Source: Cyanophora paradoxa CCMP329
Taxonomy: Eukaryota > Plantae > Glaucophyta
Length of the DNA: 64,000 nt
Direction of reading: 5' to 3'
Assembly: GCA_004431415.1 (NCBI GenBank)
Contig: QPMI01000175.1
Span: forward strand, 62,001 to 126,000
The position numbers and the translations under genes were made by a program. The notes beneath the pieces are model-generated. The model was not told the DNA's origin and made no database searches. It saw nothing but the letters and a program-made list of their open reading frames with translations. Every line of letters begins with the position of its first letter. The stretch's first letter is position 1. This document shows positions 5,298-39,143 of this stretch, piece after piece.

Positions 5298-5373
5298 TTA
5301 AAAACAATTTACTCATTATCATGTGACTCCTTGAAGGCTTGAGTCGCTCCGAGTTCAAGGACTTCTATAGCTA

Positions 5374-5573: not shown

Positions 5574-5587
5574 TACTGTTTAGAGAA

Positions 5588-7192
5588 CAAGATCCGTGCT
5601 CCTGCGGAGCACTAAGTACGGCGAAGCCTCGCGGACGCCCTCGCGGCTGTCATAGTAGGCCTATGTATAGGGCACTCAGCGACTGGCCAGCGGCCTGGCC
5701 GATCGCGAACAGCTTTCTGCAGCTGGCTGGAAGCTGGCTGGCTGACGGCCAGTCCAGCTAGCGCTGGCCGGCTAGAGGAATATTAATTTACTGAGGAAAT
5801 AAAGGCTAGGGTGGAGCAGATTGAGAAGAGATTAATTATAATATTGTTGGGAAGGAGGCCCGGGAGGGGCGAGGTTGTCGCGGCCAGGCGCATGCACAGA
5901 GCTTGCGAATCGCTTAAACAGAATCTCGCGATCGAATGCATATAGCATTGATGTGCGGGGCTGCGGAGGCGAGGGCGCGCGGAAAGACGTGCAGGTCCAT
6001 GCAGGATCGAATTTTCGGGGTCGGCTGGATTCTCGCGCCCTGTCGCGTCCTCGGAGCTCGCGAAAAGCTTAACAAAGATCTCAAATTACTATTGTAGCGA
6101 TGCGCACGCGCGAGGATGCGAGGGCGCGCGGAAAGCTGTGCAGGTCCGTCCAGGATCGAATTTTCGGCGTCGGCTCGCGGCCCGGCACATCTGCAATGCG
6201 TGCGGAAGGCTTTGTCTACATCTGAAATGCTTATCATATTGTTCCGCGCATGCGCCGCGGCGTTGGCGCACGGAAAGATGTCCGGGTCTGTTCAGAATCG
6301 ATTTTTTACCGTCGGCTGGGTTGTCGTGCTCTTCCGCGTCTTCAAAGCTTGTGGAAGGCTTCAAAAAAATGTGAAATGAATATTGTAGCGATGCGCATGC
6401 GCGAGGATGCGAGCGCGCAAGAAAAGGTCTTCAGGTCTGTAGAGGATCGAATTTTCGGGGTCGGCTGGGTCCTCGCGGCCCGGCGCATACGCAAAGCGTG
6501 CGGAAGGCTTCTTCTACATCTCAAATGCTTATGCTATTCTTCCGCGCATGTGCCGCGGCGCGGGCGCGCGGAAAGATGTCCGGGGCTGTGCAGGATCGAA
6601 TTTTTGCCACCGGGAGCCTTCCTGCGCTGTTCCGGCTCCGAAAAGCGGATCGCTGGAGTGCGCAGGTCCTGCTATGTCTATGCGCGCCCGTACGCATCGA
6701 TTGCGCACGTCGCGGGACCGGCCGGAACCGGCCGGATCAAATTTTCGGCCGACTCTTCGCACTGGAGCGTCGAGGGTGCCCGAAATCGAGCCTGCCGCGA
6801 TGCGCTCGCGCTCGCGCGTCATTCTGTATCGTTCTGGGGCGTCCCTGGCGCGATTTCGTCGCGGGACCGGGCGGGACCGGGTCCCACCTTCTGACTCGGA
6901 CTGCATGTGTCGGAGGTTAAGTACCGGAATTGATCCAGAGGGAAATTCGATTTTCGCGCGACGCCCACGGGAGAGCGGTCGTCTTAGGGGAGCCAGGACG
7001 CTAAAAATGGATGTAGAGGGGTCTGTGGGGGTTCGGGCAGCTGTGTAATGTCCATCAATCGCGTCTGTGTCGAGGCAGAATTAATAATTCTGCCTCGAGG
7101 GAGTGTGACACGGAAATTATTTAGCAGGGGGGATCTTGAGTGGAAAAAAAGGTTAAAAAAGGAATTTCGGTCGGCGGTTTTTGGGTTTGAGA
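5588..7192 (-). mobile_element. Non-autonomous Helitron2/Helentron-like copy U1 (subtype A), lacking the 5' 16 nt
   Basis: Starts (+ strand) with the family 3' end CAAGATCC-GTGCTCC/TGC/GGAGCAC hairpin-GGCGAAGCCTC and ends TTTTGGGTTTGAGA, joined directly to the next 3' end. Near-identical to 15079-16683. Confidence 0.85.
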
Positions 7193-8563
7193 CAAGATCC
7201 GTGCTCCTGCGGAGCACTAAGTACGGCGAAGCCTCGCGGACGCCCTCGCGGCTGTCACAGTAGGAGGCCAGCTGGACCCGGCCCCGCCCAGCTGCATGGC
7301 CGGGTTTCGCCGGCTTGGCACCGGCCATGCGCTGGCCCGCTTTAGCCAGCTCGAGGGAGAGCTGGCTGGCCAGAGAGCAATGTAATGAGGAGAGGGAATA
7401 TATAATTAACTAGGGGAGACCGGAGTTGAACCGGTAACGCTTGCTTTTAACTGGTGGAGCAGATTGAGAGGAGATTAACTATATAATATTGTTGGGAGGG
7501 AGGCCGCCGGGCCTGGGAGGGCGAGGTTCTCGCGGCCAGGCGCATGCACAGAGCTTGGGAATCGCTTAAACAGAATCTAGAATGCATATAGCATCGATGT
7601 GCAGGGGTGCGGAGGCAAGGGCACACGGAAAGCTTTGCAGGCCTGGCCAGGATCGAATTTTCGGGGTCGGCTGGATTCTCGCGCCCTGTCGCATCTCTAG
7701 AGTTCGCGAAAAGCTTGACAAAGATCTCAAACTACTGTTGTAGGGATGCGCACGCGTGAGGATGCGAGGGCGCGCGGAAAGCTGTGCAGGTCCGTCCAGG
7801 ATCGAATTTTCGGCGTCGGCTGGGTCCTCGCGGCCCGGCGCATTTAGAGACCGTGCGGAATGCTTTGTCTACATCTCAAATGCTTATACTATTGCTCCGC
7901 GCATGCGCCGCGGCGTTGGCGCGCGGAAAGCTGTCCAGGTTTGTGCAGGATCGAATTTTTGATGTCCGGTACCTTCTTGCGCTATTCCGGCTCCGAAAAG
8001 CAGATTTCGGGGGTGCGCAGGCCCTGCTATGTCTATGCGCGCCAGTACGCATCGAATGCGCGCCTCGCGGAACCGGCCGGAACCGGCCGGATCAAATTTT
8101 CGGCCTACTGTTCGGACTGGAGCGTTGACGGCGCCCGAAATCGAGCTTGCGTCGATGCGCTCGCCCTCGCCCGTCACTCTTTATCGTTCTGGGGCGTCCC
8201 TGGCGCGATTTCGTCGCGGGACCGGGCGGGACCGGGTCCCACCTTCTGACCTGGACTGCATTTGTCGGAGGTTAAGGACCGGATTTGATCCAGAGGGAAA
8301 TTTGATATTCGCGCGACGCCCACGGGGGAGCGGTCGTCTTAGGGGAGCCAGGACGCTAAAAATGGATCTAGAGAGGTGTGTGGGGGTTAGGGTAGCTGAG
8401 TCATTAGCGGCAATCGTGACCGTGTCGAGGCAGAATTAATAATTCTGCCTCGAGGGAGTGCGACACGGAAATTATTTATCAGGGGGGATCTCGAGTGGAA
8501 AAAAAGGTTAAAAAAGGAATTTATATCGGCGGTTTTTGGGTTTGAGAAAGAGGCTTCGCCTGA
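7193..8563 (-). mobile_element. Non-autonomous copy U2 (subtype B), complete with one 16-bp cap
   Basis: Family 3' end at 7193 and cap AAGAGGCTTCGCCTGA at 8548-8563. Near-identical to 9744-11098. Confidence 0.85.
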
Positions 8564-9743
8564 CAAGATCCGTGCTCCTGCGGAGCACTAAGTACGGCGA
8601 AGCCTCGCGGACGCCCTCGCGGCTGTCACAGTAGGCCTATAGGGCACTGGCCAGCGGCCTGGCCGATCGCGAACAGCTTTCTGGTTGGAAGCTGGCCGGC
8701 TGACGGCCAGTCCAGCTACCGCTGGCCGGCTAGAGGAATATAACTAGAGGAATATTAATGTACTGAGGAAATAAAGGGAGGCCGGAGCAGGTTGAGATTA
8801 GAGGAGATGAATTATATATAATATTGTTGAGAGGGAGGCCCGGGAGGGGCAAGGTTCTCGCGGCCAGGCGCATGCACAGAGCTTGCGAATCGCTTAAACA
8901 GAATCTTGAATGCATATAGCTATAGCATCGATGTGCGGGGCTGCGGAGCTCGAGGCGAGGGCGCGCGGAAAGATGTGCAGGTCCATGCAGGATCGAATTT
9001 TCGGGGTCGGCTGGGTCCTCGCGGCCCGTCGCATACGCAAAGCGTGCGGAAGACTTTGCCTACATCTTAAATGCTTATGCTATCGTTCCGCGCATGCGCC
9101 GCGGCGTGGGCGCGCGGAAAGATGTCAGGGCGCGTGCAGGATCGAATTTTGGCCGTCGGGTACCTTCCTGCGCTGTTCCGGCTCCGAAAAGCGGATTTCG
9201 GGGTGCGCAGGCCCTGCTATGTCCATGCGCGCCAGTACGCATCGATTGCGCGCGTCGCGGGACCGGGCGGGACCGGCTAGCGCTGGATCAAATTTTCGGC
9301 CGACTCTTCGCACTGGAGCGTCGACGGCGCTTGAAATCGAGCTTGCGGCGATGCGCTCGCCCTCGCGCGGCATTCTGTATCGTTCTGGGGCGTCCCTGGC
9401 GCGATTTCGTCGCGGGACCGGGCGGGACCGGGTCCCACCTTCTGACTCGGACTGCATTTGTCGGAGGTTAAGTACCGGAATTGATCCAGAGGGAAATTCG
9501 ATTTTCGCGCGACGCCCACGGGCGAGCGGTCGTCTTAGGGGAGCCACGACGCTAAAAATGGATCTAGAGAGGTCTGTGGGGGTTAGGGTAGCTGAGTCAT
9601 TAGCGGCAATCGCGTCCGTGTCGAGGCAGAATTAATAATTCGTCCTCGAGGGAGTGCGACGCGGAAATTATTTAGCAGGGGGGATCTTGAGTGGAAAAAA
9701 AGGTTAAAAAAGGAATTTATATCGGCGGTTTTTGGGTTTGAGA
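8564..9743 (-). mobile_element. Non-autonomous copy U3 (subtype C), no cap
   Basis: Family 3' end at 8564; ends TTTGAGA at 9743. Confidence 0.85.
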
Positions 9744-11098
9744 CAAGATCCGTGCTCCTGCGGAGCACTAAGTACGGCGAAGCCTCGCGGACGCCCTCGC
9801 GGCTGTCACAGTAGGAGGCCAGCTGGACCCGGCCCCGCCCAGCTGCATGGCCGGGTTTCGCCGGCTTGGCACCGGCCATGGGCTGGCCCGCTTTAGCCAG
9901 CTCGAGGGAGAGCTGGCTGGCCAGAGAGCAATGTAATGAGGAGAGGGAATATATAATTAACTAGGGGAGACCGGAGTTGAACCGGTAACGCTTGCTTTTA
10001 ACTGGTGGAGCAGATTGAGAGGAGATTAACTATATAATATTGTTGGGAGGGAGGCCGCCGGGCCTGGGAGGGGCGAGGTTCTCGCGGCCAGGCGCATGCA
10101 CAGAGCTTGGGAATCGCTTAAACAGAATCTAGAATGCATATAGCATCGATGTGCAGGGGTGCGGAGGCAAGGGCACACGGAAAGCTTTGCAGGCCTGGCC
10201 AGGATCGAATTTTCGGGGTCGGCTGGATTCTCGCGCCCTGTCGCATCTCTAGAGTTCGCGAAAAGCTTGACAAAGATCTCAAACTACTGTTGTAGGGATG
10301 CGCACGCGTGAGGATGCGAGGGCGCGCGGAAAGCTGTGCAGGTCCGTCCAGGATCGAATTTTCGGCGTCGGCTGGGTCCTCGCGGCCCGGCGCATTTAGA
10401 GACCGTGCGGAATGCTTTGTCTACATCTCAAATGCTTATGCTATCGTTCCGCGCATGCGCCGCGGCGTTGGCGCGCGGAAAGCTGTCCAGGTTTGTGCAG
10501 GATCGAATTTTTGATGTCCGGTACCTTCTTGCGCTATTCCGGCTCCGAAAAGCAGATTTCGGGGTGCGCAGGCCCTGCTATGTCTATGCGCGCCAGTACG
10601 CATCGAATGCGCGCCTCGCGGAACCGGCCGGAACCGGCCGGATCAAATTTTCGGCCTACTGTTCGGACTGGAGCGTTGACGGCGCCCGAAATCGAGCTTG
10701 CGTCGATGCGCTCGCCCTCGCCCGTCACTCTTTATCGTTCTGGGGCGTCCCTGGCGCGATTTCGTCGCGGGACCGGGCGGGACCGGGTCCCACCTTCTGA
10801 CCTGGACTGCATTTGTCGGAGGTTAAGGACCGGATTTGATCCAGAGGGAAATTTGATATTCGCGCGACGCCCACGGGGGAGCGGTCGTCTTAGGGGAGCC
10901 AGGACGCTAAAAATGGATCTAGAGAGGTGTGTGGGGGTTAGGGTAGCTGAGTCATTAGCGGCAATCGTGACCGTGTCGAGGCAGAATTAATAATTCTGCC
11001 TCGAGGGAGTGCGACACGGAAATTATTTATCAGGGGGGATCTCGAGTGGAAAAAAAGGTTAAAAAAGGAATTTATATCGGCGGTTTTTGGGTTTGAGA
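9744..11098 (-). mobile_element. Non-autonomous copy U4 (subtype B), no cap
   Basis: Family 3' end at 9744; ends TTTGAGA at 11098. Confidence 0.85.
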
Positions 11099-12276
11099 CA
11101 AGATCCGTGCTCCTGCGGAGCACTAAGTACGGCGAAGCCTCGCGGACGCCCTCGCGGCTGTCACAGTAGGCCTATAGGGCACTGGCCAGCGGCCTGGCCG
11201 ATCGCGAACAGCTTTCTGGTTGGAAGCTGGCCGGCTGACGGCCAGTCCAGCTACCGCTGGCCGGCTAGAGGAATATAACTAGAGGAATATTAATGTACTG
11301 AGGAAATAAAGGGAGGCCGGAGCAGGTTGAGATTAGAGGAGATGAATTATATATAATATTGTTGAGAGGGAGGCCCGGGAGGGCAAGGTTCTCGCGGCCA
11401 GGCGCATGCACAGAGCTTGCGAATCGCTTAAACAGAATCTTGAATGCATATAGCTATAGCATCGATGTGCGGGGCTGCGGAGCTCGAGGCGAGGGCGCGC
11501 GGAAAGATGTGCAGGTCCATGCAGGATCGAATTTTCGGGGTCGGCTGGGTCCTCGCGGCCCGTCGCATACGCAAAGCGTGCGGAAGACTTTGCCTACATC
11601 TTAAATGCTTATGCTATCGTTCCGCGCATGCGCCGCGGCGTGGGCGCGCGGAAAGATGTCAGGGCGCGTGCAGGATCGAATTTTGGCCGTCGGGTACCTT
11701 CCTGCGCTGTTCCGGCTCCGAAAAGCGGATTTCGGGGGTGCGCAGGCCCTGCTATGTCCATGCGCGCCAGTACGCATCGATTGCGCGCGTCGCGGGACCG
11801 GGCGGGACCGGCTAGCGCTGGATCAAATTTTCGGCCGACTCTTCGCACTGGAGCGTCGACGGCGCTTGAAATCGAGCTTGCGGCGATGCGCTCGCCCTCG
11901 CGCGGCATTCTGTATCGTTCTGGGGCGTCCCTGGCGCGATTTCGTCGCGGACCGGGCGGGACCGGGTCCCACCTTCTGACTCGGACTGCATTTGTCGGAG
12001 GTTAAGTACCGGAATTGATCCAGAGGGAAATTCGATTTTCGCGCGACGCCCACGGGCGAGCGGTCGTCTTAGGGAGCCACGACGCTAAAAATGGATCTAG
12101 AGAGGTCTGTGGGGGTTAGGGTAGCTGAGTCATTAGCGGCAATCGCGTCCGTGTCGAGGCAGAATTAATAATTCGTCCTCGAGGGAGTGCGACGCGGAAA
12201 TTATTTAGCAGGGGGGATCTTGAGTGGAAAAAAAGGTTAAAAAAGGAATTTATATCGGCGGTTTTTGGGTTTGAGA
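11099..12276 (-). mobile_element. Non-autonomous copy U5 (subtype C), no cap
   Basis: Family 3' end at 11099; ends TTTGAGA at 12276. Confidence 0.85.
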
Positions 12277-13925
12277 CAAGATCCGTGCTCCTGCGGAGCA
12301 CTAAGTACGGCGAAGCCTCGCGGACGCCCTCGCGGCTGTCACAGTAGGCCTATAGGGCACTCAGCGACTGGCCAGCGAACAGCTTTCTGGCTGGAAGCTG
12401 GCTAGCTGACGGCCAGTCCAGCAGCCCTGGCCGGCTAGAGGAATATTAATGTGCTGAGGAAATAAAGGGTGGAGCATATTGAGAGGAGATTAATTATATA
12501 TAATATTGTTGGGAAGGAGGCCCGCGGCCGGGAGGGGCGAGGTTCTCGCGGCCAGGCGCATGCACAGAGCTTGCGCATCGCTTAAACAGAATCTCGAACG
12601 CATATAGCATCGATGTGCAGGGCTGCGGAGGCGAGGGCGCGCGGATGTGCAGGCGTGGCCAGGATCGAATTTTTGCGGCGGCTGGATTGCCGCGCCTTGT
12701 CGCGTCCGCAGAGCTTGCGAAAAGCTTTAAAAAGATCTCAAATGAATATTGTAGCGATGCGCATGCGCGAGGATGCGAGGGCGCGCGGAAAGATGTACAT
12801 GTTCAGGTCCGTCCAGGATCGAATTTTCGGGGTCGGCTGGGTCCTCGCGGCCCGGCACATCTGTAAACCGTGCGGAACGCTTGATCTACATCTTAGATGC
12901 TTATGCTATTGTTCCGCGCATGCGCCGCGGCGTGGGCGGGCGGAAAGCTGTCCGGGCCTGTTCAGGATCGAATTTTTGCGTCGGCTGGGTTCTCGTGCCC
13001 TGTCGCGCCCGCAGAGCTCGCGAAAAGCTTTAAAAAGATCTCAACTGAATATAGTAGCGATGCCCGTGCGTGAGGATGCGAGGGCGCGCGGAAAGATGTG
13101 CAGGTCTGTCCAGGATCGAATTTTTGGGGTCGGCTGGGTCCCCGCGGCCCGGCACGTCCGTAAACCGTGCGGAATGCTTTGTCTACATCTTAGATGCTTA
13201 TGCTATTGTTCCGCGCATGCGCCGCGGCGTGGGCGCACGGAAAGATGTCCGGGCCTGTGCAAGATCGAATTTTTGATGTCCGGTACCTTCCTGCACTGTT
13301 CGGCCTCCGAAAAGCGGATTTCGGGGGTGCGCAGGCCCTGCTATGTCTATGCGCGCCAGTACGCATCGATTGCGCGCGTCGCGGGACCGGCCGGAACCGG
13401 CCGGATCAAAATTTCGGCCGACTGTTTGCACTGGAGCGTCGAGGGCGCCCGAAACCGAGCTTGCGGCGATGCGCTCGCCCTCGCGCGTCATTCTGTATCG
13501 TTCTGGGGCGTCCCTGGCGCGATTTCGTCGCGGGACCGGGCGGGACCGGGTCCCACCTTCTGACTCGGACTGCATTTGTCGGAGGTTAAGTACCGGAATT
13601 GATCCAGAGGGAAATTCGATTTTCGCGCGACGCCCACGGGCGAGCGGTCGTCTTAGGGGAGCCAGGACGCTAAAAATGGATCTAGAGAGGTCTGTGGGGG
13701 TTAGGGTAGCTGAGTCATTAGCGGCCATCGCGTCCGTGTCGAGGCAGAATTAATAATTCTGCCTCGAGGGAGCGCGACGCGGAAATTATTTAGCAGGGGA
13801 GATCTCGAGTGGAAAAAAAGGTTAAAAAAGGAATTTATATCGGCGGTTTTTGGGTTTGAGAAAGAGGCTTCGCCTGAAAGAGGCTTCGCCTGAAAGAGGC
13901 TTCGCCTGAAAGAGGCTTCGCCTGA
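12277..13925 (-). mobile_element. Non-autonomous copy U6 (subtype D) with four stacked 16-bp caps
   Basis: Family 3' end at 12277, five ~148-bp subrepeats, and (AAGAGGCTTCGCCTGA)x4 at 13862-13925. Confidence 0.85.
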
Positions 13926-15078
13926 GTACGGCGAAGCCTCGCGGACGCCCTCGCGGCTGTCACAGTAGGCCTATAGGGCACTGGCCAGCGGCCTGGCCGA
14001 TCGCGAACAGCTTTCTGGTTGGAAGCTGGCCGGCTGACGGCCAGTCCAGCTACCGCTGGCCGGCTAGAGGAATATAACTAGAGGAATATTAATGTACTGA
14101 GGAAATAAAGGGAGGCCGGAGCAGGTTGAGATTAGAGGAGATGAATTATATATAATATTGTTGAGAGGGAGGCCCGGGAGGGGCAAGGTTCTCGCGGCCA
14201 GGCGCATGCACAGAGCTTGCGAATCGCTTAAACAGAATCTTGAATGCATATAGCTATAGCATCGATGTGCGGGGCTGCGGAGCTCGAGGCGAGGGCGCGC
14301 GGAAAGATGTGCAGGTCCATGCAGGATCGAATTTTCGGGGTCGGCTGGGTCCTCGCGGCCCGTCGCATACGCAAAGCGTGCGGAAGACTTTGCCTACATC
14401 TTAAATGCTTATGCTATCGTTCCGCGCATGCGCCGCGGCGTGGGCGCGCGGAAAGATGTCAGGGCGCGTGCAGGATCGAATTTTGGCCGTCGGGTACCTT
14501 CCTGCGCTGTTCCGGCTCCGAAAAGCGGATTTCGGGGGTGCGCAGGCCCTGCTATGTCCATGCGCGCCAGTACGCATCGATTGCGCGCGTCGCGGGACCG
14601 GGCGGGACCGGCTAGCGCTGGATCAAATTTTCGGCCGACTCTTCGCACTGGAGCGTCGACGGCGCTTGAAATCGAGCTTGCGGCGATGCGCTCGCCCTCG
14701 CGCGGCATTCTGTATCGTTCTGGGGCGTCCCTGGCGCGATTTCGTCGCGGGACCGGGCGGGACCGGGTCCCACCTTCTGACTCGGACTGCATTTGTCGGA
14801 GGTTAAGTACCGGAATTGATCCAGAGGGAAATTCGATTTTCGCGCGACGCCCACGGGCGAGCGGTCGTCTTAGGGGAGCCACGACGCTAAAAATGGATCT
14901 AGAGAGGTCTGTGGGGGTTAGGGTAGCTGAGTCATTAGCGGCAATCGCGTCCGTGTCGAGGCAGAATTAATAATTCGTCCTCGAGGGAGTGCGACGCGGA
15001 AATTATTTAGCGGGGGGGATCTTGAGTGGAAAAAAAGGTTAAAAAAGGAATTTATATCGGCGGTTTTTGGGTTTGAGA
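13926..15078 (-). mobile_element. Non-autonomous copy U7 (subtype C), 3' hairpin deleted, no cap
   Basis: Begins at GTACGGCGAAGCCTC, missing the ~28-bp terminal hairpin segment; ends TTTGAGA at 15078. Confidence 0.85.
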
Positions 15079-16715
15079 CAAGATCCGTGCTCCTGCGGAG
15101 CACTAAGTACGGCGAAGCCTCGCGGACGCCCTCGCGGCTGTCATAGTAGGCCTATGTATAGGGCACTCAGCGACTGGCCAGCGGCCTGGCCGATCGCGAA
15201 CAGCTTTCTGCAGCTGGCTGGAAGCTGGCTGGCTGACGGCCAGTCCAGCTAGCGCTGGCCGGCTAGAGGAATATTAATTTACTGAGGAAATAAAGGCTAG
15301 GGTGGAGCAGATTGAGAAGAGATTAATTATAATATTGTTGGGAAGGAGGCCCGGGAGGGGCGAGGTTGTCGCGGCCAGGCGCATGCACAGAGCTTGCGAA
15401 TCGCTTAAACAGAATCTCGCGATCGAATGCATATAGCATTGATGTGCGGGGCTGCGGAGGCGAGGGCGCGCGGAAAGACGTGCAGGTCCATGCAGGATCG
15501 AATTTTCGGGGTCGGCTGGATTCTCGCGCCCTGTCGCGTCCTCGGAGCTCGCGAAAAGCTTAACAAAGATCTCAAATTACTATTGTAGCGATGCGCACGC
15601 GCGAGGATGCGAGGGCGCGCGGAAAGCTGTGCAGGTCCGTCCAGGATCGAATTTTCGGCGTCGGCTCGCGGCCCGGCACATCTGCAATGCGTGCGGAAGG
15701 CTTTGTCTACATCTGAAATGCTTATCATATTGTTCCGCGCATGCGCCGCGGCGTTGGCGCACGGAAAGATGTCCGGGTCTGTTCAGAATCGATTTTTTAC
15801 CGTCGGCTGGGTTGTCGTGCTCTTCCGCGTCTTCAAAGCTTGTGGAAGGCTTCAAAAAAATGTGAAATGAATATTGTAGCGATGCGCATGCGCGAGGATG
15901 CGAGCGCGCAAGAAAAGGTCTTCAGGTCTGTAGAGGATCGAATTTTCGGGGTCGGCTGGGTCCTCGCGGCCCGGCGCATACGCAAAGCGTGCGGAAGGCT
16001 TCTTCTACATCTCAAATGCTTATGCTATTCTTCCGCGCATGTGCCGCGGCGCGGGCGCGCGGAAAGATGTCCGGGGCTGTGCAGGATCGAATTTTTGCCA
16101 CCGGGAGCCTTCCTGCGCTGTTCCGGCTCCGAAAAGCGGATCGCTGGAGTGCGCAGGTCCTGCTATGTCTATGCGCGCCCGTACGCATCGATTGCGCACG
16201 TCGCGGGACCGGCCGGAACCGGCCGGATCAAATTTTCGGCCGACTCTTCGCACTGGAGCGTCGAGGGTGCCCGAAATCGAGCCTGCCGCGATGCGCTCGC
16301 GCTCGCGCGTCATTCTGTATCGTTCTGGGGCGTCCCTGGCGCGATTTCGTCGCGGGACCGGGCGGGACCGGGTCCCACCTTCTGACTCGGACTGCATGTG
16401 TCGGAGGTTAAGTACCGGAATTGATCCAGAGGGAAATTCGATTTTCGCGCGACGCCCACGGGAGAGCGGTCGTCTTAGGGGAGCCAGGACGCTAAAAATG
16501 GATGTAGAGGGGTCTGTGGGGGTTCGGGCAGCTGTGTAATGTCCATCAATCGCGTCTGTGTCGAGGCAGAATTAATAATTCTGCCTCGAGGGAGTGTGAC
16601 ACGGAAATTATTTAGCAGGGGGGATCTTGAGTGGAAAAAAAGGTTAAAAAAGGAATTTCGGTCGGCGGTTTTTGGGTTTGAGAAAGAGGCTTCGCCTGAA
16701 AGAGGCTTCGCCTGA
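15079..16715 (-). mobile_element. Non-autonomous copy U8 (subtype A) with two caps
   Basis: Family 3' end at 15079 and (AAGAGGCTTCGCCTGA)x2 at 16684-16715. Confidence 0.85.
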
Positions 16716-17452
16716 TCGGCTGGGTCCTCGCGGCCCGTCGCATACGCAAAGCGTGCGGAAGACTTTGCCTACATCTTAAATGCTTATGCTATCGTTCCGC
16801 GCATGCGCCGCGGCGTGGGCGCGCGGAAAGATGTCAGGGCGCGTGCAGGATCGAATTTTGGCCGTCGGGTACCTTCCTGCGCTGTTCCGGCTCCGAAAAG
16901 CGGATTTCGGGGGTGCGCAGGCCCTGCTATGTCCATGCGCGCCAGTACGCATCGATTGCGCGCGTCGCGGGACCGGGCGGGACCGGCTAGCGCTGGATCA
17001 AATTTTCGGCCGACTCTTCGCACTGGAGCGTCGACGGCGCTTGAAATCGAGCTTGCGGCGATGCGCTCGCCCTCGCGCGGCATTCTGTATCGTTCTGGGG
17101 CGTCCCTGGCGCGATTTCGTCGCGGGACCGGGCGGACCGGGTCCCACCTTCTGACTCGGACTGCATTTGTCGGAGGTTAAGTACCGGAATTGATCCAGAG
17201 GGAAATTCGATTTTCGCGCGACGCCCACGGGCGAGCGGTCGTCTTAGGGGAGCCACGACGCTAAAAATGGATCTAGAGAGGTCTGTGGGGGTTAGGGTAG
17301 CTGAGTCATTAGCGGCAATCGCGTCCGTGTCGAGGCAGAATTAATAATTCGTCCTCGAGGGAGTGCGACGCGGAAATTATTTAGCAGGGGGGATCTTGAG
17401 TGGAAAAAAAGGTTAAAAAAGGAATTTATATCGGCGGTTTTTGGGTTTGAGA
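16716..17452 (-). mobile_element. Non-autonomous copy U9 (subtype C), 3'-truncated, no cap
   Basis: Starts mid-body (TCGGCTGGGTCCTCGCGGCCCGTCG); ends TTTGAGA at 17452. Confidence 0.8.
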
Positions 17453-17799
17453 CAAGATCCGTGCTCCTGCGGAGCACTAAGTACGGCGAAGCCTCGCGGC
17501 CGCCATCGCGGCTGTCACAGCAGAGGGGCCGGCACTGCTGGGCGCCCGGAGAGTAGGCGGCCAGCTCCAGCCCCGGCCGGCTCATGCAACAGGGAAACGA
17601 CGACTGCAGACGCACATATATAATTTGCTACGCATGCCGGGCTTGCGACATCTGCACTAACTGAGGGCTAGCAAACTTGAACGCGCGAGGGCATGGCTGA
17701 AAGCTATCTACAACATTCGCGCGCATGAGCAGGCAGCGAGCTCGAGGTTGTATACACGAGCAGGTCCCCTTCATGGCGCAACTTGTGTAGGCAGGACGC

Positions 17800-18430: not shown

Positions 18431-18694
18431 GGGCGGAAACGGACAAGGAAAGCGCTGGAGAGTACTGCTGATCCGAGGTATGCAGATGCGTGTAGCTGGC
18501 CGAGCGAGCGAACGTATAGAAACACATGTAATTGGACGATATGCTACCTAGAAACGCGGACATGATCGACGGGCAGTCTGGCTGCACGTGCATGCAGGTC
18601 CCGTAGATGCACCGCGTTATTTCTTTCTGCACACAAAAATACGTCAGTGGGAGTTATGATCATAATGCATCTAGATGTGCATGATTTAACGCAC

Positions 18695-27270: not shown

Positions 27271-29559
27271 TGTGTCGCGAGTGGAGATCTCGAGAAATGC
27301 GAGATGGGGCTTGTTTCCGCATGCTCGCAATTTGTTGGAATTTCCAGTGCCATTTCAACATTGAGATCATTTCCGCAGAGATCGGCTGCAGTCGAATTCC
27401 ATTTCCATTCGCGGCACACAGCATTGCCGACGATCCCTGGCGACGTATCATCATGCTTCTGTGTTGAATGTGAGAATGCATTAATGTCTAGGCGTATACG
27501 AGGTCCGGCGCACCGGCTCGCGCGGTGCTCGCGTTTGTGCCGCTTGACTGAAAGGTCCAACTACCATGCTCTCGGAATCACTTGCATGTTCGCGGTTGAC
27601 TGCGAAGTTTTAGAATCTTCTTGGAAAGTGTTTTACGGGTTGTGCACATTGTTTCTTTTGCCTGCTGCGTTGCATAGTTGCAGCATGTGAGGTCGTATCT
27701 TGACGACGCAGTGAGATTGGATTTGACGTTGTAGCTCGTTGACGTTCTAAAACTATGCGAGAATGTCATTTGATGACACACAATAACATTATAATTATGA
27801 CTCGGAGCACCTGACAGGATTTCAGTTGGTTCAACGGGGTTTGAATCAGTTGTAGGTATGACACTTTCTGTATGAGTGCGTTGACGTGGTGGTGACAGTG
27901 TTCGCGGACGACGTCTGCGATTTCCAGATGGCGTTTCTTCAAGAGATTCTGAATCTGATGAAGATTCTCCTGTAGAACTCTTCGAAGCATGTTCATGTGC
28001 CAATTCTTCTCGCATGGATTGAGGTGCGTGGCGGACAGTGTTACGTCGTTGTGCTGGTGGGTTCGAATCAGGGTTTGTTTCAAGACGTAAATTTATGTTG
28101 AAGTAGGCGCACTTGTATTTGTGGGATTAAGGACCATGTACACCATCAGCGATACAAATAGTATCGCGACGGCTGCTGGCAACGACCAGTGCAGCGATGC
28201 ACGCTGGATATGCTCCACGTAAGGCGCATCGGTCGGTAGAGGCATTGCGAGAGTCCCATGATTGCCTGACAAAGTGAGTGTGATCCAGATGCCAGTAACC
28301 GATGGGCTGAATAAGAAGGCTGTTATGTACGCCACTGCGGTGCGCCACGATGGGGCGATTTTCAGAATTTTGTGAATTCACATCATGTGAAAAACGAAAT
28401 CGTCACCCGTCGATATTTGAGCCCGAACACGTTGGACCCACGTATAGTAATATTCACGCCTCCGCGCGTTGTTAATTAATCTTCGCAGAGCTGGAAAAAT
28501 GCGCATATTAATATTGGGTGTGTGATCGACGTGCCGGTTGTGTATACGCACCGGAGTAACCCCTTCTGTTTTTCGTGCGTGTCACAGCATACATATCCAA
28601 TATCAGTGTCAATGCCAGTCCTAGATCTGTGTCGTTGGCAACGGAGAGCGTTCCTTTGTCGGACAAAGCAAAAGGAGAATTGCACTTGATACCCAATTTT
28701 GCGTTTTGCATGTATAGCATCACAGTAATTGCTGAAGCGATTGTCAATGCATTATATGGGCGCCACAGTGATAAAAGAAGATTTTCTTACTCGATATGAA
28801 CATGATCACGCTTGTCGACAACGACGCATTCAGAGTAGTTAGGCAGTTCAGAAATACTGTGAGTGACGACGTGCACAACGGAATCACAGGTAATTCGGCA
28901 TTGTCAGGAAGAGTCACATCACAGTCATGACGACAATCGTTATTGTCAAGGGGACATTCACGACATTTGCGTTTTTGTCCTGTAAACCAACAGAACATTC
29001 CTGCTCGAAATATGTTAGTATGTACGTTGCGTCGTTTACCATATGCAATGGGATTTACCAAGCAGTGCCAGTAATGCGGTAATAAAATCGGCAATGCACA
29101 GAATGTGTACAGTCACAGTTGAGAGTAGTTCCGTCTCTCTCATTTCGGTTCTGGATCTTTCGAAGTCGGCACTGATGGTTCCGTGAGAGCGTGCCGGCAC
29201 GACTGTCGACCCCCGCGCCTGGAGGGAGAGCAAGTTGGCAGATCTAGACATGGCTATATCTAAGACGGTATCTGCTCGTCGATCTCAGCAATGTGGGAAG
29301 CGATTTCAAATCTTGCTTACGTCCATGGTCGATGACAATTGTGGAACACAACGACAGTGCTCGGAACTGTTGTGCAACCATTAAGATGATGCATTTAAGT
29401 ATGAACCGTTGACGTGTGCGTTTACGTCGGGATTTGAAGTGCTGCACTGCTGCGTAGACTCCTGGTTTGTTAAGAATTCGCATTTTTTAAAGAGGCGCTC
29501 TGCGCATGCACAGTGACTATTAGCCTGCGGACTCCGCGCGTGTACGGAAACGGACAATC

Positions 29560-30930
29560 TCAGGAGTCGAGAGTAACGGAAACTCACCGACGGGGCGGGA
29601 CGACGACTCGATGCAGGCGCCGGCCGGTTCGACTGACGGGCGCGCCGGTCTGCGCAACGACGGCGAGATCAGCGGGGGGCGGGAGGGGTGGGCGGGCGGA
29701 CCAGCTGACGAGACTACGGACAACAGAAGGCCTGGAGGGCGCCAGTCAGTTGGGGGCCTCTCGCGCGGGAAAATGGGGCCTAACGTCCGGCCCGTCTGAA
29801 GCCTAGATGGGGCGATTTCCGACGTCGGCCGATGCCCCCCACATATTCAGCCCACCCCCCTTCCCAACATTCATAGTTACCGTGTCCGTCTTGCCTGAGA
29901 TGCTCCCGGAAGCCACAACGTTGCCGGTCACGTTGAGATCACCGCCGACGCTCGTGTTGCCGGCTGCCGTCACTGTGAGGGCCGCCGGGGTCGGCGACAG
30001 GATGGCCGACTTGGGCGCGGCCCCACGTGCCCGATGGGAACCGTTGCGGGGGTCCGGACCGTGCAGCGAGAGAACACGTCCAGCGAGCCTGTTGTGTTCG
30101 AGTGCGCCTCGCCCACCATCGTATCCGTAGCGGGGGGGCAGGGCGCGCGGGCGAGCTCACGAGGGTAGGAACGACGGGAGGCCTGGAGGGTGCAAGTGAG
30201 CCGAGGGCACGGGGGCCGGGGGTAAGCAGGGATCGGATGCTCACGGGGAAAACGAATCGATGGAGGTGCCGGCCGCTTCGACTGACGAGCACGACGACCT
30301 GCACGCAGATGGGGAGATCAGCGGGGGGCGGGAGGGGAGGGCGCGCGGGCGAGCTGACGAGACTACGGACGACGGCAGGCCTGCCAGGCTGGAGGGTGCC
30401 AGTCAGCCGAGGTCGCGGGGGCCGGAAGCGGGCCGGGAGGCTCACGAGCACGACGACCCGAAGGAGGCGCCAACCGGTTCGAGCTGACGAGGCTAGGGAC
30501 GACGAGACGGCCTGCACAGAGAGCACGACGACTTGATGTAAGTGCCGGCCGCTTCGACTGACGAGCGCAGCTCAGGGGCCGGGAGGGGAGGGCGCGCAGG
30601 CGAGCTAGGGTGCCGGGCATGAAGGAGGATTGCGCGGCTCACGGGGACGACGACTCGATGCAGGTGCCGGCCCGTTGGACTGACGAGCGTGCCGGCCTGC
30701 GGAGAGATTGGGAGGCCTGCGCAGAGATTGGAAGATCAGTTCGGACTGGGAGGCCAGCGCGCGGTGCGGAGCTGACGGCAGCTGGCTGCTGTGTCGGCGA
30801 GCAAACGATGATAGAAAGCACGAATGATCTGGACGCGCTCGTCAGCCCAGAGCGCCGGCCGGAAAGCTCACGGGGAGGTGTACTTGATGCAGGTGCTAGC
30901 CGTTTCGACTGCAAAGCACGGGTGCCTGCG
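29560..30930. repeat. Degenerate GC-rich repeats inside U10, upstream of RepHel (duplicated at ~34660-36030)
   Basis: GCCGGCCG(G/C)TTCGACTGACG near 29619, 30268 and 30545, with a variant near 30666. Confidence 0.6.
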
Positions 30931-31194
30931 CAGAGACATGCGTTAACTTTCGTATCTTCCGCGTGTTGTACTAGCATATACTTCCTAGCTATAGCTACTT
31001 AACAGCCATTAGTCTCGCTTGTGCAAAGTATACGTAAATGACACGCGCACGCATACGTATACGTACGTATATGCTGACACGCGCTGACATGTTGACACAG
31101 ATGTGCTTCCTTAGAGGCGGTACTTGCAATTGTTTACAGAATGATGTGCGTGCGTTAACGTCGACATGCCATGCTGCATACTTAGTTGGCACGG

Positions 31195-31406
31195 GCCGTA
31201 CGTACATACATGCTGTCAGACACGCGTGAAGTACTATTAGGCTAGGCTGGCTTGCCAACCCGCATGGCCGGTACGTACATGCATACTGTCAGACGCGCGT
31301 GAACTACTATTAGGCTAGGCTGGCTTGCCAGTCCCCACGGCCCGTACGTACATGCATGCTGTCAGACGCGCGTGAAGTACTACTAGTAGGCTAGGCCGGC
31401 TTGCCG
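31195..31406. repeat. Three 73-bp tandem repeats (again at ~36296-36507)
   Basis: GTACGTACAT..TGTCAGAC(A/G)CGCGTGAA..TAGGCTAGGC(T/C)GGCTTGCC at 31198, 31271 and 31344. Confidence 0.85.
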
Positions 31407-34400
31407 GCCGCGGTCCGGGCGCCAGGACCGGGCCATGACCGGTACTATGTTCAACGGTTGTACGGTAGCCGGTGCCTACAGGGCCTACCGTAGTACAGGG
31501 CTACTACAGGCTGGCCTACATGTACAGGGTCACGGGTGCAGCTGCGGTATAGCTACCAGACTAGTACCAGTCTAGCAATTGAAGACCGCCAGGCTAGCGC
31601 TAGCCTAGTAGCGCTTTCGACGGTCAAGGTACAAGTAACTTACTAAGTTAGTAGCGCGGTAGTCATAATGATATAATAACTATTTTGCATTGTACAGTAG
31701 CTAGACCGAGTGTGCGAAACTGCAAGACTCGGAGCGACAAACTTTGACGACTACCTGACAGTACCTGTCATAAATACATGCTCGGTCGAATCGTCAATGG
31801 CGCCGTTTCGATTGCGTGAGATCTTTTTTTTATTCAAGATCTCGATCGCGACGGATCCCGGATTTATTCAAGATCTCGACGGATCCCGGATCTTCTGTCA
31901 ATGAGTTCGCCGGATCTTTGTTTGTATTCAGGATCTCGCAAGATCGGACGTTAATAAAGATCTGTATACGCGCTGTCGCCCAGTGCAGGTACGGCAAAAA
32001 TGGCTGGAAGCTGGCGCCGGCGGCCGCGGCCCGCGCCCAGGCCGGGCTAGCTAGCGCTGCACCCGCACTACCGTAGTAACCGTAGTACCGGTAGTACTGG
32101 CTTACTGGGCTATGGCCGGATTTGGCCGGCTTGGCCATGGGCTGGCCCGTTATACCCAGCTCGAGAGAGAGGTGGCTGGCCATAGAGGGACAGAGAATAC
32201 ATAATTAATTGGGGAAGGTGTTGGACCGGTAACACTTGCTTTTAACTGGTGGAGGAGATTGAGAGAAGATTAGTTTAAAATTAATATATTGTTGGGGGGG
32301 AGGCCCGGGAGGGGGGAGATGCTCGCAGCCAGGCGCATGCGCAGAGCTTGCGAATCGCTTAAACAGAACCTCGAATGCATATAGTATCAATATGCAGGGC
32401 TGCGGAGGCGAGGGCGCGCGGAAAGCTGTGCAGGCCCGTTCAGGATCGAATTTTCGCGTCGGCTGGTAAAATTAATATATTGTTGGGGGGGAGGCCCGGG
32501 AGGGGCGAGATTCTCGCAGCCAGGCGCATGCGCAGAGCTTGCGAATCGCTTAAACAGAACCTCGAATGCATATAGTATCAATATGCAGGGCTGCGGAGGC
32601 GAGGGCGCGCGGAAAGCTGTGCAGGCCCGTTCAGGATCGAATTTTCGCGTCGGCTGGTTCTCGTGCCCTGTCGCGCCCGCAGAGCTCGCGAAAACCTTTA
32701 AAAAGATCTTAAGTGAATACTGTAGCGATGGGCATGGGTGAGGATGCGAGGGCGCGCGGAAAGGTCTTCAGGTCCGTGAAGGATCGAATTTTCGGGTCGG
32801 CTGGATCCTCGCGGCCTGGCGCATTTAGAGACCGTGCGGAAGGCTTCTTCTACATCTCAAATGCTTATGTTATCGTTCCGCGCATGCGCCGCGGCGTGGG
32901 CGGGCGGAAAGATCTCCGGGCCTGTCTAGGATCGAATTTTTGCCGTCGGTTGGGTTCTCGTGCTCTTTCGCGTCTTCGAAGTTTGTGGAAGGCTTTGATA
33001 AAATCTCAAATGAATATACCAGCGATGCGGCCTGCGTGAGGACGCGAGGGCGCGCGGAAAGTTGTTCAGGTTTGAAGAGGATTGAATTTTCGGGGTCGGC
33101 TGGGTCATCGCGACTGGGCGCATGTGCAAACCGTGTGGAGGGCTTCTTCTACATCTGAAATGCTTATGCTATTGTTCCGCGCATGCGCCGCGGCGCGGGC
33201 GCGCGGAAAGATGTCCGGGCCTGTCCAGGATCGAATTTTCGGGGTCGGCTGGGCCCTCGCGGCCCGGCACATCAGTAAAGCGTGCGAAACGCTTGCTCTA
33301 CATCTCAGATGCTTATGCTATTGCTCCGCGCATGCGCCGCGGCGCGGGCGCGCGGAAAGATGTCCGGGCCCGTGCAGGATCGAATTTTTGTCATCGGGTA
33401 CCTTCCTGCGCTGTTGCGGCTCCGAAAAGCGGATTTTGGGGGTGGGCAGGCCGTGCTATGTCTATGCGCGCCAGTACGCATGGATTGCGCGCGTTGCGGG
33501 ACCGGCCGGAACCGGCCGGATCAAATTTTCGGCCGACTCTTCGTACTGGAGCGTCCGACGGTCGACGGCGCCCGAAATCGAGCTTGCGGCGATGCGAAAA
33601 ATGCGCATATTAATATTGGGTGTGTGATCGACGTGCCGGTTGTGTATACGCACCGGAGTAACCCCTTCTGTTTTTCGTGCGTGTCACAGCATACATATCC
33701 AATATCAGTGTCAATGCCAGTCCTAGATCTGTGTCGTTGGCAACGGAGAGCGTTCCTTTGTCGGACAAAGCAAAAGGAGAATTGCACTTGATACCCAATT
33801 TTGCGTTTTGCATGTATAGCATCACAGTAATTGCTGAAGCGATTGTCAATGCATTATATGGGCGCCACAGTGATAAAAGAAGATTTTCTTACTCGATATG
33901 AACATGATCACGCTTGTCGACAACGACGCATTCAGAGTAGTTAGGCAGTTCAGAAATACTGTGAGTGACGACGTGCACAACGGAATCACAGGTAATTCGG
34001 CATTGTCAGGAAGAGTCACATCACAGTCATGACGACAATCGTTATTGTCAAGGGGACATTCACGACATTTGCGTTTTTGTCCTGTAAACCAACAGAACAT
34101 TCCTGCTCGAAATATGTTAGTATGTACGTTGCGTCGTTTACCATATGCAATGGGATTTACCAAGCAGTGCCAGTAATGCGGTAATAAAATCGGCAATGCA
34201 CAGAATGTGTACAGTCACAGTTGAGAGTAGTTCCGTCTCTCTCATTTCGGTTCTGGATCTTTCGAAGTCGGCACTGATGGTTCCGTGAGAGCGTGCCGGC
34301 ACGACTGTCGACCCCCGCGCCTGGAGGGAGAGCAAGTTGGCAGATCTAGACATGGCTATATCTAAGACGGTATCTGCTCGTCGATCTCAGCAATGTGGGA

Positions 34401-37400
34401 AGCGATTTCAAATCTTGCTTACGTCCATGGTCGATGACAATTGTGGAACACAACGACAGTGCTCGGAACTGTTGTGCAACCATTAAGATGATGCATTTAA
34501 GTATGAACCGTTGACGTGTGCGTTTACGTCGGGATTTGAAGTGCTGCACTGCTGCGTAGACTCCTGGTTTGTTAAGAATTCGCATTTTTTAAAGAGGCGC
34601 TCTGCGCATGCACAGTGACTATTAGCCTGCGGACTCCGCGCGTGTACGGAAACGGACAATCTCAGGAGTCGAGAGTAACGGAAACTCACCGACGGGGCGG
34701 GACGACGACTCGATGCAGGCGCCGGCCGGTTCGACTGACGGGCGCGCCGGTCTGCGCAACGACGGCGAGATCAGCGGGGGGCGGGAGGGGTGGGCGGGCG
34801 GACCAGCTGACGAGACTACGGACAACAGAAGGCCTGGAGGGCGCCAGTCAGTTGGGGGCCTCTCGCGCGGGAAAATGGGGCCTAACGTCCGGCCCGTCTG
34901 AAGCCTAGATGGGGCGATTTCCGACGTCGGCCGATGCCCCCCACATATTCAGCCCACCCCCCTTCCCAACATTCATAGTTACCGTGTCCGTCTTGCCTGA
35001 GATGCTCCCGGAAGCCACAACGTTGCCGGTCACGTTGAGATCACCGCCGACGCTCGTGTTGCCGGCTGCCGTCACTGTGAGGGCCGCCGGGGTCGGCGAC
35101 AGGATGGCCGACTTGGGCGCGGCCCCACGTGCCCGATGGGAACCGTTGCGGGGGTCCGGACCGTGCAGCGAGAGAACACGTCCAGCGAGCCTGTTGTGTT
35201 CGAGTGCGCCTCGCCCACCATCGTATCCGTAGCGGGGGGGCAGGGCGCGCGGGCGAGCTCACGAGGGTAGGAACGACGGGAGGCCTGGAGGGTGCAAGTG
35301 AGCCGAGGGCACGGGGGCCGGGGGTAAGCAGGGATCGGATGCTCACGGGGAAAACGACTCGATGGAGGTGCCGGCCGCTTCGACTGACGAGCACGACGAC
35401 CTGCACGCAGATGGGGAGATCAGCGGGGGGCGGGAGGGGAGGGCGCGCGGGCGAGCTGACGAGACTACGGACGACGGCAGGCCTGCCAGGCTGGAGGGTG
35501 CCAGTCAGCCGAGGTCGCGGGGGCCGGAAGCGGGCCGGGAGGCTCACGAGCACGACGACCCGAAGGAGGCGCCAACCGGTTCGAGCTGACGAGGCTAGGG
35601 ACGACGAGACGGCCTGCACAGAGAGCACGACGACTTGATGTAAGTGCCGGCCGCTTCGACTGACGAGCGCAGCTCAGGGGCCGGGAGGGGAGGGCGCGCA
35701 GGCGAGCTAGGGTGCCGGGCATGAAGGAGGATTGCGCGGCTCACGGGACGACGACTCGATGCAGGTGCCGGCCCGTTGGACTGACGAGCGTGCCGGCCTG
35801 CGGAGAGATTGGGAGGCCTGCGCAGAGATTGGAAGATCAGTTCGGACTGGGAGGCCAGCGCGCGGTGCGGAGCTGACGGCAGCTGGCTGCTGTGTCGGCG
35901 AGCAAACGATGATAGAAAGCACGAATGATCTGGACGCGCTCGTCAGCCCAGAGCGCCGGCCGGAAAGCTCACGGGGAGGTGTACTTGATGCAGGTGCTAG
36001 CCGTTTCGACTGCAAAGCACGGGTGCCTGCGCAGAGACATGCGTTAACTTTCGTATCTTCCGCGTGTTGTACTAGCATATACTTCCTAGCTATAGCTACT
36101 TAACAGCCATTAGTCTCGCTTGTGCAAAGTATACGTAAATGACACGCGCACGCATACGTATACGTACGTATATGCTGACACGCGCTGACATGTTGACACA
36201 GATGTGCTTCCTTAGAGGCGGTACTTGCAATTGTTTACAGAATGATGTGCGTGCGTTAACGTCGACATGCCATGCTGCATACTTAGTTGGCACGGGCCGT
36301 ACGTACATACATGCTGTCAGACACGCGTGAAGTACTATTAGGCTAGGCTGGCTTGCCAACCCGCATGGCCGGTACGTACATGCATACTGTCAGACGCGCG
36401 TGAACTACTATTAGGCTAGGCTGGCTTGCCAGTCCCCACGGCCCGTACGTACATGCATGCTGTCAGACGCGCGTGAAGTACTACTAGTAGGCTAGGCCGG
36501 CTTGCCGGCCGCGGTCCGGGCGCCAGGACCGGGCCATGACCGGTACTATGTTCAACGGTTGTACGGTAGCCGGTGCCTACAGGGCCTACCGTAGTACAGG
36601 GCTACTACAGGCTGGCCTACATGTACAGGGTCACGGGTGCAGCTGCGGTATAGCTACCAGACTAGTACCAGTCTAGCAATTGAAGACCGCCAGGCTAGCG
36701 CTAGCCTAGTAGCGCTTTCGACGGTCAAGGTACAAGTAACTTACTAAGTTAGTAGCGCGGTAGTCATAATGATATAATAACTATTTTGCATTGTACAGTA
36801 GCTAGACCGAGTGTGCGAAACTGCAAGACTCGGAGCGACAAACTTTGACGACTACCTGACAGTACCTGTCATAAATACATGCTCGGTCGAATCGTCAATG
36901 GCGCCGTTTCGATTGCGTGAGATCTTTTTTTATTCAAGATCTCGATCGCGACGGATCCCGGATTTATTCAAGATCTCGACGGATCCCGGATCTTCTGTCA
37001 ATGAGTTCGCCGGATCTTTGTTTGTATTCAGGATCTCGCAAGATCGGACGTTAATAAAGATCTGTATACGCGCTGTCGCCCAGTGCAGGTACGGCAAAAA
37101 TGGCTGGAAGCTGGCGCCGGCGGCCGCGGCCCGCGCCCAGGCCGGGCTAGCTAGCGCTGCACCCGCACTACCGTAGTAACCGTAGTACCGGTAGTACTGG
37201 CTTACTGGGCTATGGCCGGATTTGGCCGGCTTGGCCATGGGCTGGCCCGTTATACCCAGCTCGAGAGAGAGGTGGCTGGCCATAGAGGGACAGAGAATAC
37301 ATAATTAATTGGGGAAGGTGTTGACCGGTAACACTTGCTTTTAACTGGTGGAGGAGATTGAGAGAAGATTAGTTTAAAATTAATATATTGTTGGGGGGAG

Positions 37401-39079
37401 GCCCGGGAGGGGGAGATGCTCGCAGCCAGGCGCATGCGCAGAGCTTGCGAATCGCTTAAACAGAACCTCGAATGCATATAGTATCAATATGCAGGGCTGC
37501 GGAGGCGAGGGCGCGCGGAAAGCTGTGCAGGCCCGTTCAGGATCGAATTTTCGCGTCGGCTGGTAAAATTAATATATTGTTGGGGGGGAGGCCCGGGAGG
37601 GGCGAGATTCTCGCAGCCAGGCGCATGCGCAGAGCTTGCGAATCGCTTAAACAGAACCTCGAATGCATATAGTATCAATATGCAGGGCTGCGGAGGCGAG
37701 GGCGCGCGGAAAGCTGTGCAGGCCCGTTCAGGATCGAATTTTCGCGTCGGCTGGGTTCTCGTGCCCTGTCGCGCCCGCAGAGCTCGCGAAAACCTTTAAA
37801 AAGATCTTAAGTGAATACTGTAGCGATGGGCATGGGTGAGGATGCGAGGGCGCGCGGAAAGGTCTTCAGGTCCGTGAAGGATCGAATTTTCGGGTCGGCT
37901 GGATCCTCGCGGCCTGGCGCATTTAGAGACCGTGCGGAAGGCTTCTTCTACATCTCAAATGCTTATGTTATCGTTCCGCGCATGCGCCGCGGCGTGGGCG
38001 GGCGGAAAGATCTCCGGGCCTGTCTAGGATCGAATTTTTGCCGTCGGTTGGGTTCTCGTGCTCTTTCGCGTCTTCGAAGTTTGTGGAAGGCTTTGATAAA
38101 ATCTCAAATGAATATACCAGCGATGCGGCCTGCGTGAGGACGCGAGGGCGCGCGGAAAGTTGTTCAGGTTTGAAGAGGATTGAATTTTCGGGGTCGGCTG
38201 GGTCATCGCGACTGGGCGCATGTGCAAACCGTGTGGAGGGCTTCTTCTACATCTGAAATGCTTATGCTATTGTTCCGCGCATGCGCCGCGGCGCGGGCGC
38301 GCGGAAAGATGTCCGGGCCTGTCCAGGATCGAATTTTCGGGGTCGACTGGGCCCTCGCGGCCCGGCACATCAGTAAAGCGTGCGAAACGCTTGCTCTACA
38401 TCTCAGATGCTTATGCTATTGCTCCGCGCATGCGCCGCGGCGCGGGCGCGCGGAAAGATGTCCGGGCCCGTGCAGGATCGAATTTTTGTCATCGGGTACC
38501 TTCCTGCGCTGTTGCGGCTCCGAAAAGCGGATTTTGGGGTGGGCAGGCCGTGCTATGTCTATGCGCGCCAGTACGCATGGATTGCGCGCGTTGCGGGACC
38601 GGCCGGAACCGGCCGGATCAAATTTTCGGCCGACTCTTCGTACTGGAGCGTCCGACGGTCGACGGCGCCCGAAATCGAGCTTGCGGCGATGCGCTCGCGC
38701 TCGTCCGTCATTCTGTATCGTTCTGGGCGTCCCTGGCGCAATTTCGTCGCGGGACCGGGCGGGCCGGGTCCCACCTTCTGACTCGGACTGCATTTGTCGG
38801 AGGTTAAGTACCGGAATTGATCCAGAGGGAAATTCGATTTTCGCGGGACGCCCACGGGCGAGCGGTCGTCTTAGGGGAGCCAGGACGCTAAAAATGGATC
38901 TAGAGAGGTCTGTGGGGGTTCGGGTGGGTGTGTGACTAGCAGCAATCGCGCCCGTGTCGAGGCAGAATTAATAATTCTGCCTCGAGGGAGTGCGACATGG
39001 AAATTATTTAGCAGGGGGGATCTTGAGTGGAAAAAAAGGTTAAAAAAGGAATTTAGATCGTCGGTTTTTGGGTTTGAGA

Positions 39080-39143
39080 AAGAGGCTTCGCCGGAAAGAG
39101 GCTTCGCCTGAAAGAGGCTTCGCCTGAAAGAGGCTTCGCCTGA
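39080..39143 (-). repeat. Four stacked 16-bp Helitron 5' caps (innermost is a variant)
   Basis: AAGAGGCTTCGCCGGA followed by (AAGAGGCTTCGCCTGA)x3. Confidence 0.95.

Follow-up and report, generated by a model that had tools for sequence, protein, structure and literature searches.

The DNA analysed here (the window: 64,000 nucleotides of contig QPMI01000175.1 from Cyanophora paradoxa CCMP329) carries a Helitron2-type array that most likely arose by repeated insertion of the element into resident copies of itself, between nucleotides (nt) 16 and 17 of the 5′ end; the higher-order layout would then owe its shape to block copying or to secondary sites. The array occupies one locus, and its element direction is the minus strand of the window. 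We use ‘cap’ for the first 16 nt of the element 5′ end and ‘body’ for the element from nt 17 onward. Self-insertion at nt 16/17 had been proposed in an earlier reading of the sequence (the original prediction); it is the best explanation for six exact junctions that join six distinct pairs of subtypes.

Layout of caps, bodies and junctions

The cap is found 11 times on the minus strand (ten exact copies and one variant, against an expectation of 0.00 in shuffled sequence), in stacks of four, two, four and one, together with ten bodies on the same strand, every one of which begins at nt 17 with TCTCAAACCC. Read in the element direction, the order is four caps, B0, B1, two caps, B2, B3, four caps, B4–B7, one cap, B8, B9 and host DNA. 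Six junctions place an intact 3′ end directly onto nt 17 with no bases gained or lost (7192/3, 9743/4, 11098/9, 12276/7, 15078/9 and 17452/3); cap and body at these junctions rebuild the intact 5′ end exactly, so that a target-site duplication is absent there. The junctions, stacks and coordinates given in the original prediction are all borne out, including the count of ten exact 16-mers and one copy with a single change.

The outer stack (four copies of 16 nt, 39080–39143) has the variant as its innermost copy (39080–39095), with a single base change at the third base of the cap, and this copy is attached to B0. B0 (17453–39079) is an autonomous-type body of 21.6 kb whose 3′ end is intact. 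It carries the RepHel gene and 149-bp internal repeats, and within it there is a tandem duplication of 5.1 kb. It is followed by B1 (16716–17452; subtype C, capless), which ends internally after 737 of ∼1180 nt, precisely at the stack of two 16-nt caps (16684–16715). B2 (15079–16683; subtype A, 1605 nt) is complete and aligns with 100% identity to B9, and B3 (13926–15078; subtype C, capless) lacks its last 28 nt, with the 3′ hairpin and terminus, stopping 4 nt past the 3′ arm of the asymmetric terminal inverted repeat (ATIR), exactly at the second stack of four 16-nt caps (13862–13925). These two truncations next to cap stacks had been missed in the original prediction. Microhomology was considered as their cause and rejected, as there is nothing beyond one T; an opposite-strand nick at the 3′ ATIR was likewise rejected, being one base off.

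The remaining bodies were assigned by alignment where they lie inside the array: B4 (12277–13861; subtype D, 1585 nt), B5 (11099–12276; subtype C, capless, 1178 nt), B6 (9744–11098; subtype B, capless, 1355 nt) and B8 (7193–8547; subtype B, 1355 nt, with four substitutions relative to B6). Between the last two lies B7 (8564–9743; subtype C, capless, 1180 nt), whose intact 3′ end is joined to the single cap (8548–8563) in an ordinary head-to-tail junction. B9 (5588–7192; subtype A, capless) provides the outermost 3′ end, after which the host sequence TTCTCTAAAC begins (window 5587). This flank resembles element nt 16–24 plus one extra T, and bases 3′ of the cut may thus help in target choice, to judge from this single site. 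Rejoining the host flanks gave a sequence with no paralogue within the window.

Alignment also upholds the subtype order A, B, C, B, C, D, C, A, C, autonomous, in which no neighbouring bodies are of equal subtype. Subtypes A, B, C and D differ by 8–35 substitutions over their first 400 nt, and the copies of subtype C are identical apart from homopolymer indels and one single-nucleotide polymorphism (SNP). The six capless junctions represent the pairs auto–C, A–C, D–C, C–B, B–C and B–A. Because these pairs are all distinct and the subtypes so divergent, the capless junctions are neither copies of one junction nor a concatemer of a single donor, in line with what had been claimed. As a separate observation, all bodies contain internal repeats of 149 bp, which have diverged and show a higher-order period of 298 bp, and their number is the main difference between subtypes; stretches of them lie at 5960–6600, 12660–13275, 15456–16095, 32598–33388 and 37695–38486.

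When caps and bodies are read as opening and closing brackets, the inner blocks balance (two caps to two bodies, four to four and one to one), as the original prediction had it, and the depth never falls below 1. The outer level does not close: it has four caps versus three bodies, leaving a final depth of 1 and one surplus cap. The match between stacks and body runs has p = 0.04–0.06 within the window under a crude null model, with a value of ∼0.06 for the two inner stacks. The further claim of an exact tally with a readable order of events fails, with 11 caps for ten bodies, two truncated bodies and three junctions that go beyond cap-to-body insertion. The caps track the number of elements roughly; the number and order of events are not uniquely readable, because several histories yield the same layout.

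Logan contigs, which are Illumina-derived, were searched in four runs from different samples; the depth ratios that follow are rough contig depths and not copy numbers. The joint of 3′ end, cap and body is present in four of four runs, with a depth ∼7–15 times that of B0 in its near-unique 3′ part. The capless junction, with the 3′ terminus before nt 17 of a subtype A body, is seen as a loose end in X1, X2 and X8 among the matches listed. The subtype C stretch reaches ∼50–80 times, and the subtype A stretch 9–15 times, the depth of the same part of B0. From these depths and junction occurrences, the family is an abundant one, and since both types of junction are also present in data other than this assembly, they are not assembly artefacts. 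This settles one part of the artefact question posed at the outset, while the exact cap numbers and the truncation junctions are not confirmed by these contigs.

Proposed self-insertion and the competing explanations

The strength of the self-insertion reading lies in the constancy of the position. On the element strand, TTT starts at 26 places in each body, and some of these belong to longer T runs (nt 49–54 and 59–65) that fit the published Helitron2 preference better than nt 16/17 does; the chance of six junctions falling at one position is ∼1e-7 to 1e-5 if they are independent. We propose that RepHel would copy the element from its initial 5′ T through to the G that follows the 3′ hairpin, and would insert this copy into a target that is cut on the 5′ side of a T. 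A strongly favoured target would be the T^T that resident copies have at nt 16/17. This site lies two bases beyond the hairpin and the 5′ arm of the ATIR, and is probably preferred since RepHel binds that end and finds the nearest suitable T there. With each insertion the old 16 nt would stay upstream and the old body would be displaced downstream; a complete copy inserted between nt 16 and 17 therefore gives the order cap, cap, new body, old body. The variant cap, innermost in its stack and on the most divergent body, is where nesting predicts it, although on its own this is a 1-in-4 coincidence. Intact C copies lack a T at the position of the B1 junction; if that junction is a cut at an element end, the initial T of the cap is therefore part of the element, and all junctions would then be cuts on the 5′ side of a T, which is what an HUH enzyme is expected to make.

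Taken as a whole, the array could be described as one outer element (the first cap and the last body) around four side-by-side nests with three, two, four and one caps. Insertion only at the boundary of cap and body would result in one stack, and four are observed. The side-by-side junctions call for either a second target (cap^cap or 3′end^nt17) or ready-made nests that were copied in as blocks when inner 3′ ends were read through. Block movement, a double-capped autonomous element or a later deletion would each fit the surplus cap and the truncation of bodies at block ends; the surplus cap is explained equally well by a body lost with the B1 deletion and by an autonomous element travelling with two caps. 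Truncations occur at two of three block boundaries versus none of the six capless junctions (Fisher p = 0.083). This placement and the model outcomes given below lean towards block movement by read-through, although neither is decisive. There is precedent for read-through in PMC5148889 (Fig. 7) and in the end-bypass result for Helraiser.

Several points weigh against the self-insertion reading. There is the surplus cap (11 caps to ten bodies), and the cause of the truncations of B1 and B3 is not shown. The basis is one locus, with no empty site and no strain polymorphism seen, and the host site, G^TTCTC, is unlike a copy of the self site. Under models of one insertion at a time, four pure side-by-side nests appear in only 2–15% of the outcomes that have four stacks. 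The strict placement of subtype C at every second position (p = 0.024 in a post hoc test) is a hint of recombination or of block copying. Finally, a contig of run X19 has a cap joined within the second T run of a subtype A body, at nt 62/63 (window 16637), and hence nt 16/17 is not the sole self site.

The alternation of subtype C also speaks for the first of the rival explanations, in which a few ancestral self-insertion nests grew mostly by unequal crossing-over or conversion among near-identical copies, with subtype C as a hub that shuffles one capless junction. The near-identity of the C copies (homopolymer indels and one SNP apart), the identity of B2 and B9 and the similarity of B5–B6 to B7–B8 also favour it. 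The last comparison is less close than it seems, however, as we find a cap within the B7–B8 arrangement and none within B5–B6, and B6 and B8 differ at four sites. There are six distinct junction pairs, exchanged blocks would tend to become unbalanced, yet the inner blocks match, and subtype C is ∼5 times commoner than A genome-wide by contig depth, which partly explains its frequency. We consider growth mainly by crossing-over to be improbable.

Less probable again is an origin of the bodies as rolling-circle concatemers, with a secondary nick at nt 16/17 as the point of joining, the 16-mer having expanded separately by slippage and the match in numbers being due to chance. Plant tandem arrays of 5′-truncated Helitrons have been ascribed to rolling-circle amplification (as cited in PMC5148889), and the within-window p value of the balance, on its crude null, leaves some room for a chance match. 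A single donor should nevertheless give identical neighbours; here none share a subtype, with the 8–35 substitutions in 400 nt noted above, and the variant cap beside B0 has not been copied by its outer neighbours. An assembly artefact in the array or in its cap counts is very improbable: homopolymer indels among copies do resemble long-read consensus errors, no contig spans the whole array, and neither the exact cap numbers nor the two truncation junctions are visible among the matches listed in the Logan contigs, but capless and head-to-tail junctions both occur in Illumina-derived contigs of several runs, the subtype substitutions are consistent, and an assembler would not produce matched stacks.

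Repeated self-insertion thus remains the explanation that we favour. More tentatively, and as something that we would put at somewhat less than even, RepHel may be directed by its own 5′ hairpin and ATIR to a fixed cut two bases past the repeat arm; resident copies may then be the main landing site, a safe haven of the element's own making, from which whole nests would move as units.

Element anatomy, classification and surroundings

The ATIR is 11 bp long and perfect. Its 5′ arm is nt 4–14 of the cap and its partner lies 32 nt before the 3′ end (5620–5630 on the minus strand in B9, with others at 7225, 8596, 9776, 11131, 12309, 13930, 15111 and 17485). The cap contains a 5′ hairpin with a 4-bp stem and a GAA loop, and the 3′ terminal hairpin has a 7-bp stem and a GCA loop and is positioned 8 nt from the end (5596–5612 on the minus strand as the example; there are eight intact copies). 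The RepHel transposase gene (18695–25607, minus strand) is spliced and was read exon by exon, with upstream exons undefined. Its motifs in B0 are HUH (LHGH) at 23248, Y2 (YMFKY) at 22497 and the Pif1 Walker A and Walker B at 20943 and 20667. Pfam matches above the cut-off were obtained for Helitron_like_N (E 3.7e-9) and PIF1 (E 6.1e-7); DUF6570, described as a marker of HLE2 (PMC11417382), gave a weak match (E 3e-4, 21.7 bits) under the cut-off of 24.3, and the nearest relative from outside Cyanophora, P0008, has DUF6570 at 1e-13. The closest proteins to RepHel are EukProt models of C. paradoxa, with ∼80–98% identity per exon, and more distant paralogues are found on other contigs.

By its ATIR, hairpins at both ends and HUH–Y2–Pif1 RepHel, the element as predicted from sequence matches Helitron2/HLE2 as described in PMC5148889 and PMC11417382, the identity that had been assigned originally. 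Published ATIR lengths for HLE2 are 12–16 nt (HELIANO) or at least 11 bp (Thomas 2014), and 11 bp is at the short edge of this range. The Helitron2 target is T^T or T^(T/C), with which the self site T^T and the site at nt 62/63, in a T run, agree. For the host site, either G^T or T^T can be read, according to the end to which the terminal T is assigned; no empty site was seen. Helitron1/HLE1, with 3′ CTRR, an A^T target and no inverted repeats, was rejected, as the 3′ end is CTTG, an ATIR is present and an A^T site is absent. No Pfam match to an AP endonuclease domain, as found in Helentrons, was obtained in the minus-strand open reading frames (ORFs) scanned, in which small exons could escape.

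Other features of the autonomous body were noted. Upstream of RepHel and within the element there is a weak NTF2 match (27096–27560, minus strand; E 3e-4, 36 residues), and a Pro-Glu repeat within the helicase part of RepHel (19600–19680, minus strand) gives rise to a spurious Trypan_PARP match. A captured-looking GC-rich fragment is present at 34960–35230 and 29860–30130 (minus strand); its translation has a Gly/Thr-rich stretch like fibre-type repeats and no Pfam match. The 5.1-kb tandem duplication (28494–38693) has copies that differ by two substitutions and seven single-base indels, and is either a recent event or an assembly artefact; its junction at 33596 is preceded by a five-T run and a shared C, resembling a Helitron2 target. 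Outside the array, a small MITE-like inverted-repeat element (5370–5580; MITE, miniature inverted-repeat transposable element) starts ∼10 bp after the array 3′ end, with an 8-bp palindrome before it, and a perfect 576-bp tandem duplication (4145–5296) lies ∼290 bp past that end. A duplicated segment of 275 bp is found at 51633–51907 and 62187–62460 with 99% identity.

Relation to known Helitrons and significance

The closest parallels are FoHeli1 and FoHeli2 of Fusarium oxysporum, which are Helitron2 elements (PMC5148889, PMC13342296) and share with the Cyanophora element a TCAG start, a hairpin with a GAA loop, an ATIR and a 3′ hairpin. The first 31 nt of FoHeli1 are duplicated in two strains, and 31 or 65 nt in another, which has been ascribed to self-insertion; overall, repeats of the first 31, 65, 73 or 85 nt are reported, the 31-nt form in more than one strain, and TR4 isolates have two, three or five 5′ termini (PMC5148889, PMC13342296). 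In our own reading of the published FoHeli1 5′ sequence, nt 28–32 are TCAT^A, matching the general TNAT^A target of that family, and a self site that recurs can therefore be no more than a match to a motif. In Metarhizium acridum, three tandem copies have been read as a possible double 5′ self-insertion (PMC5148889). Stacked termini produced by self-insertion close to the 5′ end are thus already known, which weakens the novelty that was first claimed. The two systems differ in that the FoHeli stacks vary in length (31, 65, 73 and 85 nt) and combine several 5′ termini with one 3′ end, whereas in Cyanophora the 16-nt offset, against the hairpin, is the same at all 11 caps and displaced bodies of four subtypes are still present. 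What is new is the intact multi-subtype nest, with its bodies retained and a single 16-nt offset against the 5′ hairpin: we found no earlier description of it in a literature of limited coverage, nor did we find a paper that deals with Helitrons in Cyanophora or with fixed-site nests that are intact, most subscription journals being outside that coverage.

Centromeric tandem Helitron arrays of plants (Xiong, Dooner, Du 2016, as cited in PMC5148889 and PMC5876387), of the HLE1 type and attributed to rolling-circle amplification, likewise have head-to-tail truncated copies with intact 3′ ends according to the citing papers; we found no report in them that the absent 5′ pieces are stacked upstream. 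HelenXT233 of Xenopus tropicalis (HLE2; PMC11417382) is likewise autonomous with two left termini in direct repeat, but the two are non-identical and no nest of capless bodies is described. Helentrons and HINEs (PMC4067079) also have subterminal inverted repeats, a 3′ stem-loop, T-rich targets and internal tandem repeats; Helentrons differ in carrying the AP endonuclease domain, not found in the Cyanophora ORFs scanned, and in having no described fixed self-site (PMC4067079). Cap stacks are absent from the distant relatives for which DNA was available (L033, L034 and L035), and when viral and metagenome contigs were scanned for the body start, the matches were no more than chance 18-mers, beyond which the similarity did not extend. 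Among these relatives, the tick Haemaphysalis longicornis (L035, 8020–24859) has a head-to-tail pair of 8.4-kb HLE2 elements, 99% identical and with no cap stack; a copy of the 5′ end lies in inverted orientation just upstream of the first element (7993–8018). The metagenome contig L034 has ∼85–97-bp repeats of 10-mers upstream of its RepHel gene (5106–5392), possibly repeated 5′ termini or an internal satellite.

Helitron target choice and the origin of tandem arrays are poorly resolved, and arrays are usually ascribed to rolling-circle concatemers. The Cyanophora locus is a clean case of a satellite-like array for which repeated self-insertion is the better explanation; its mixture of subtypes provides internal markers, and the transposase gene is present. 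Stacked 5′ termini should be taken as a rough element count only. The locus also defines a 26-nt substrate for a direct joining assay. If the cut is indeed directed by the hairpin, a eukaryotic rolling-circle transposon would be choosing its target by structure, and the locus would provide a short natural target with which to test how Helitrons select their sites.

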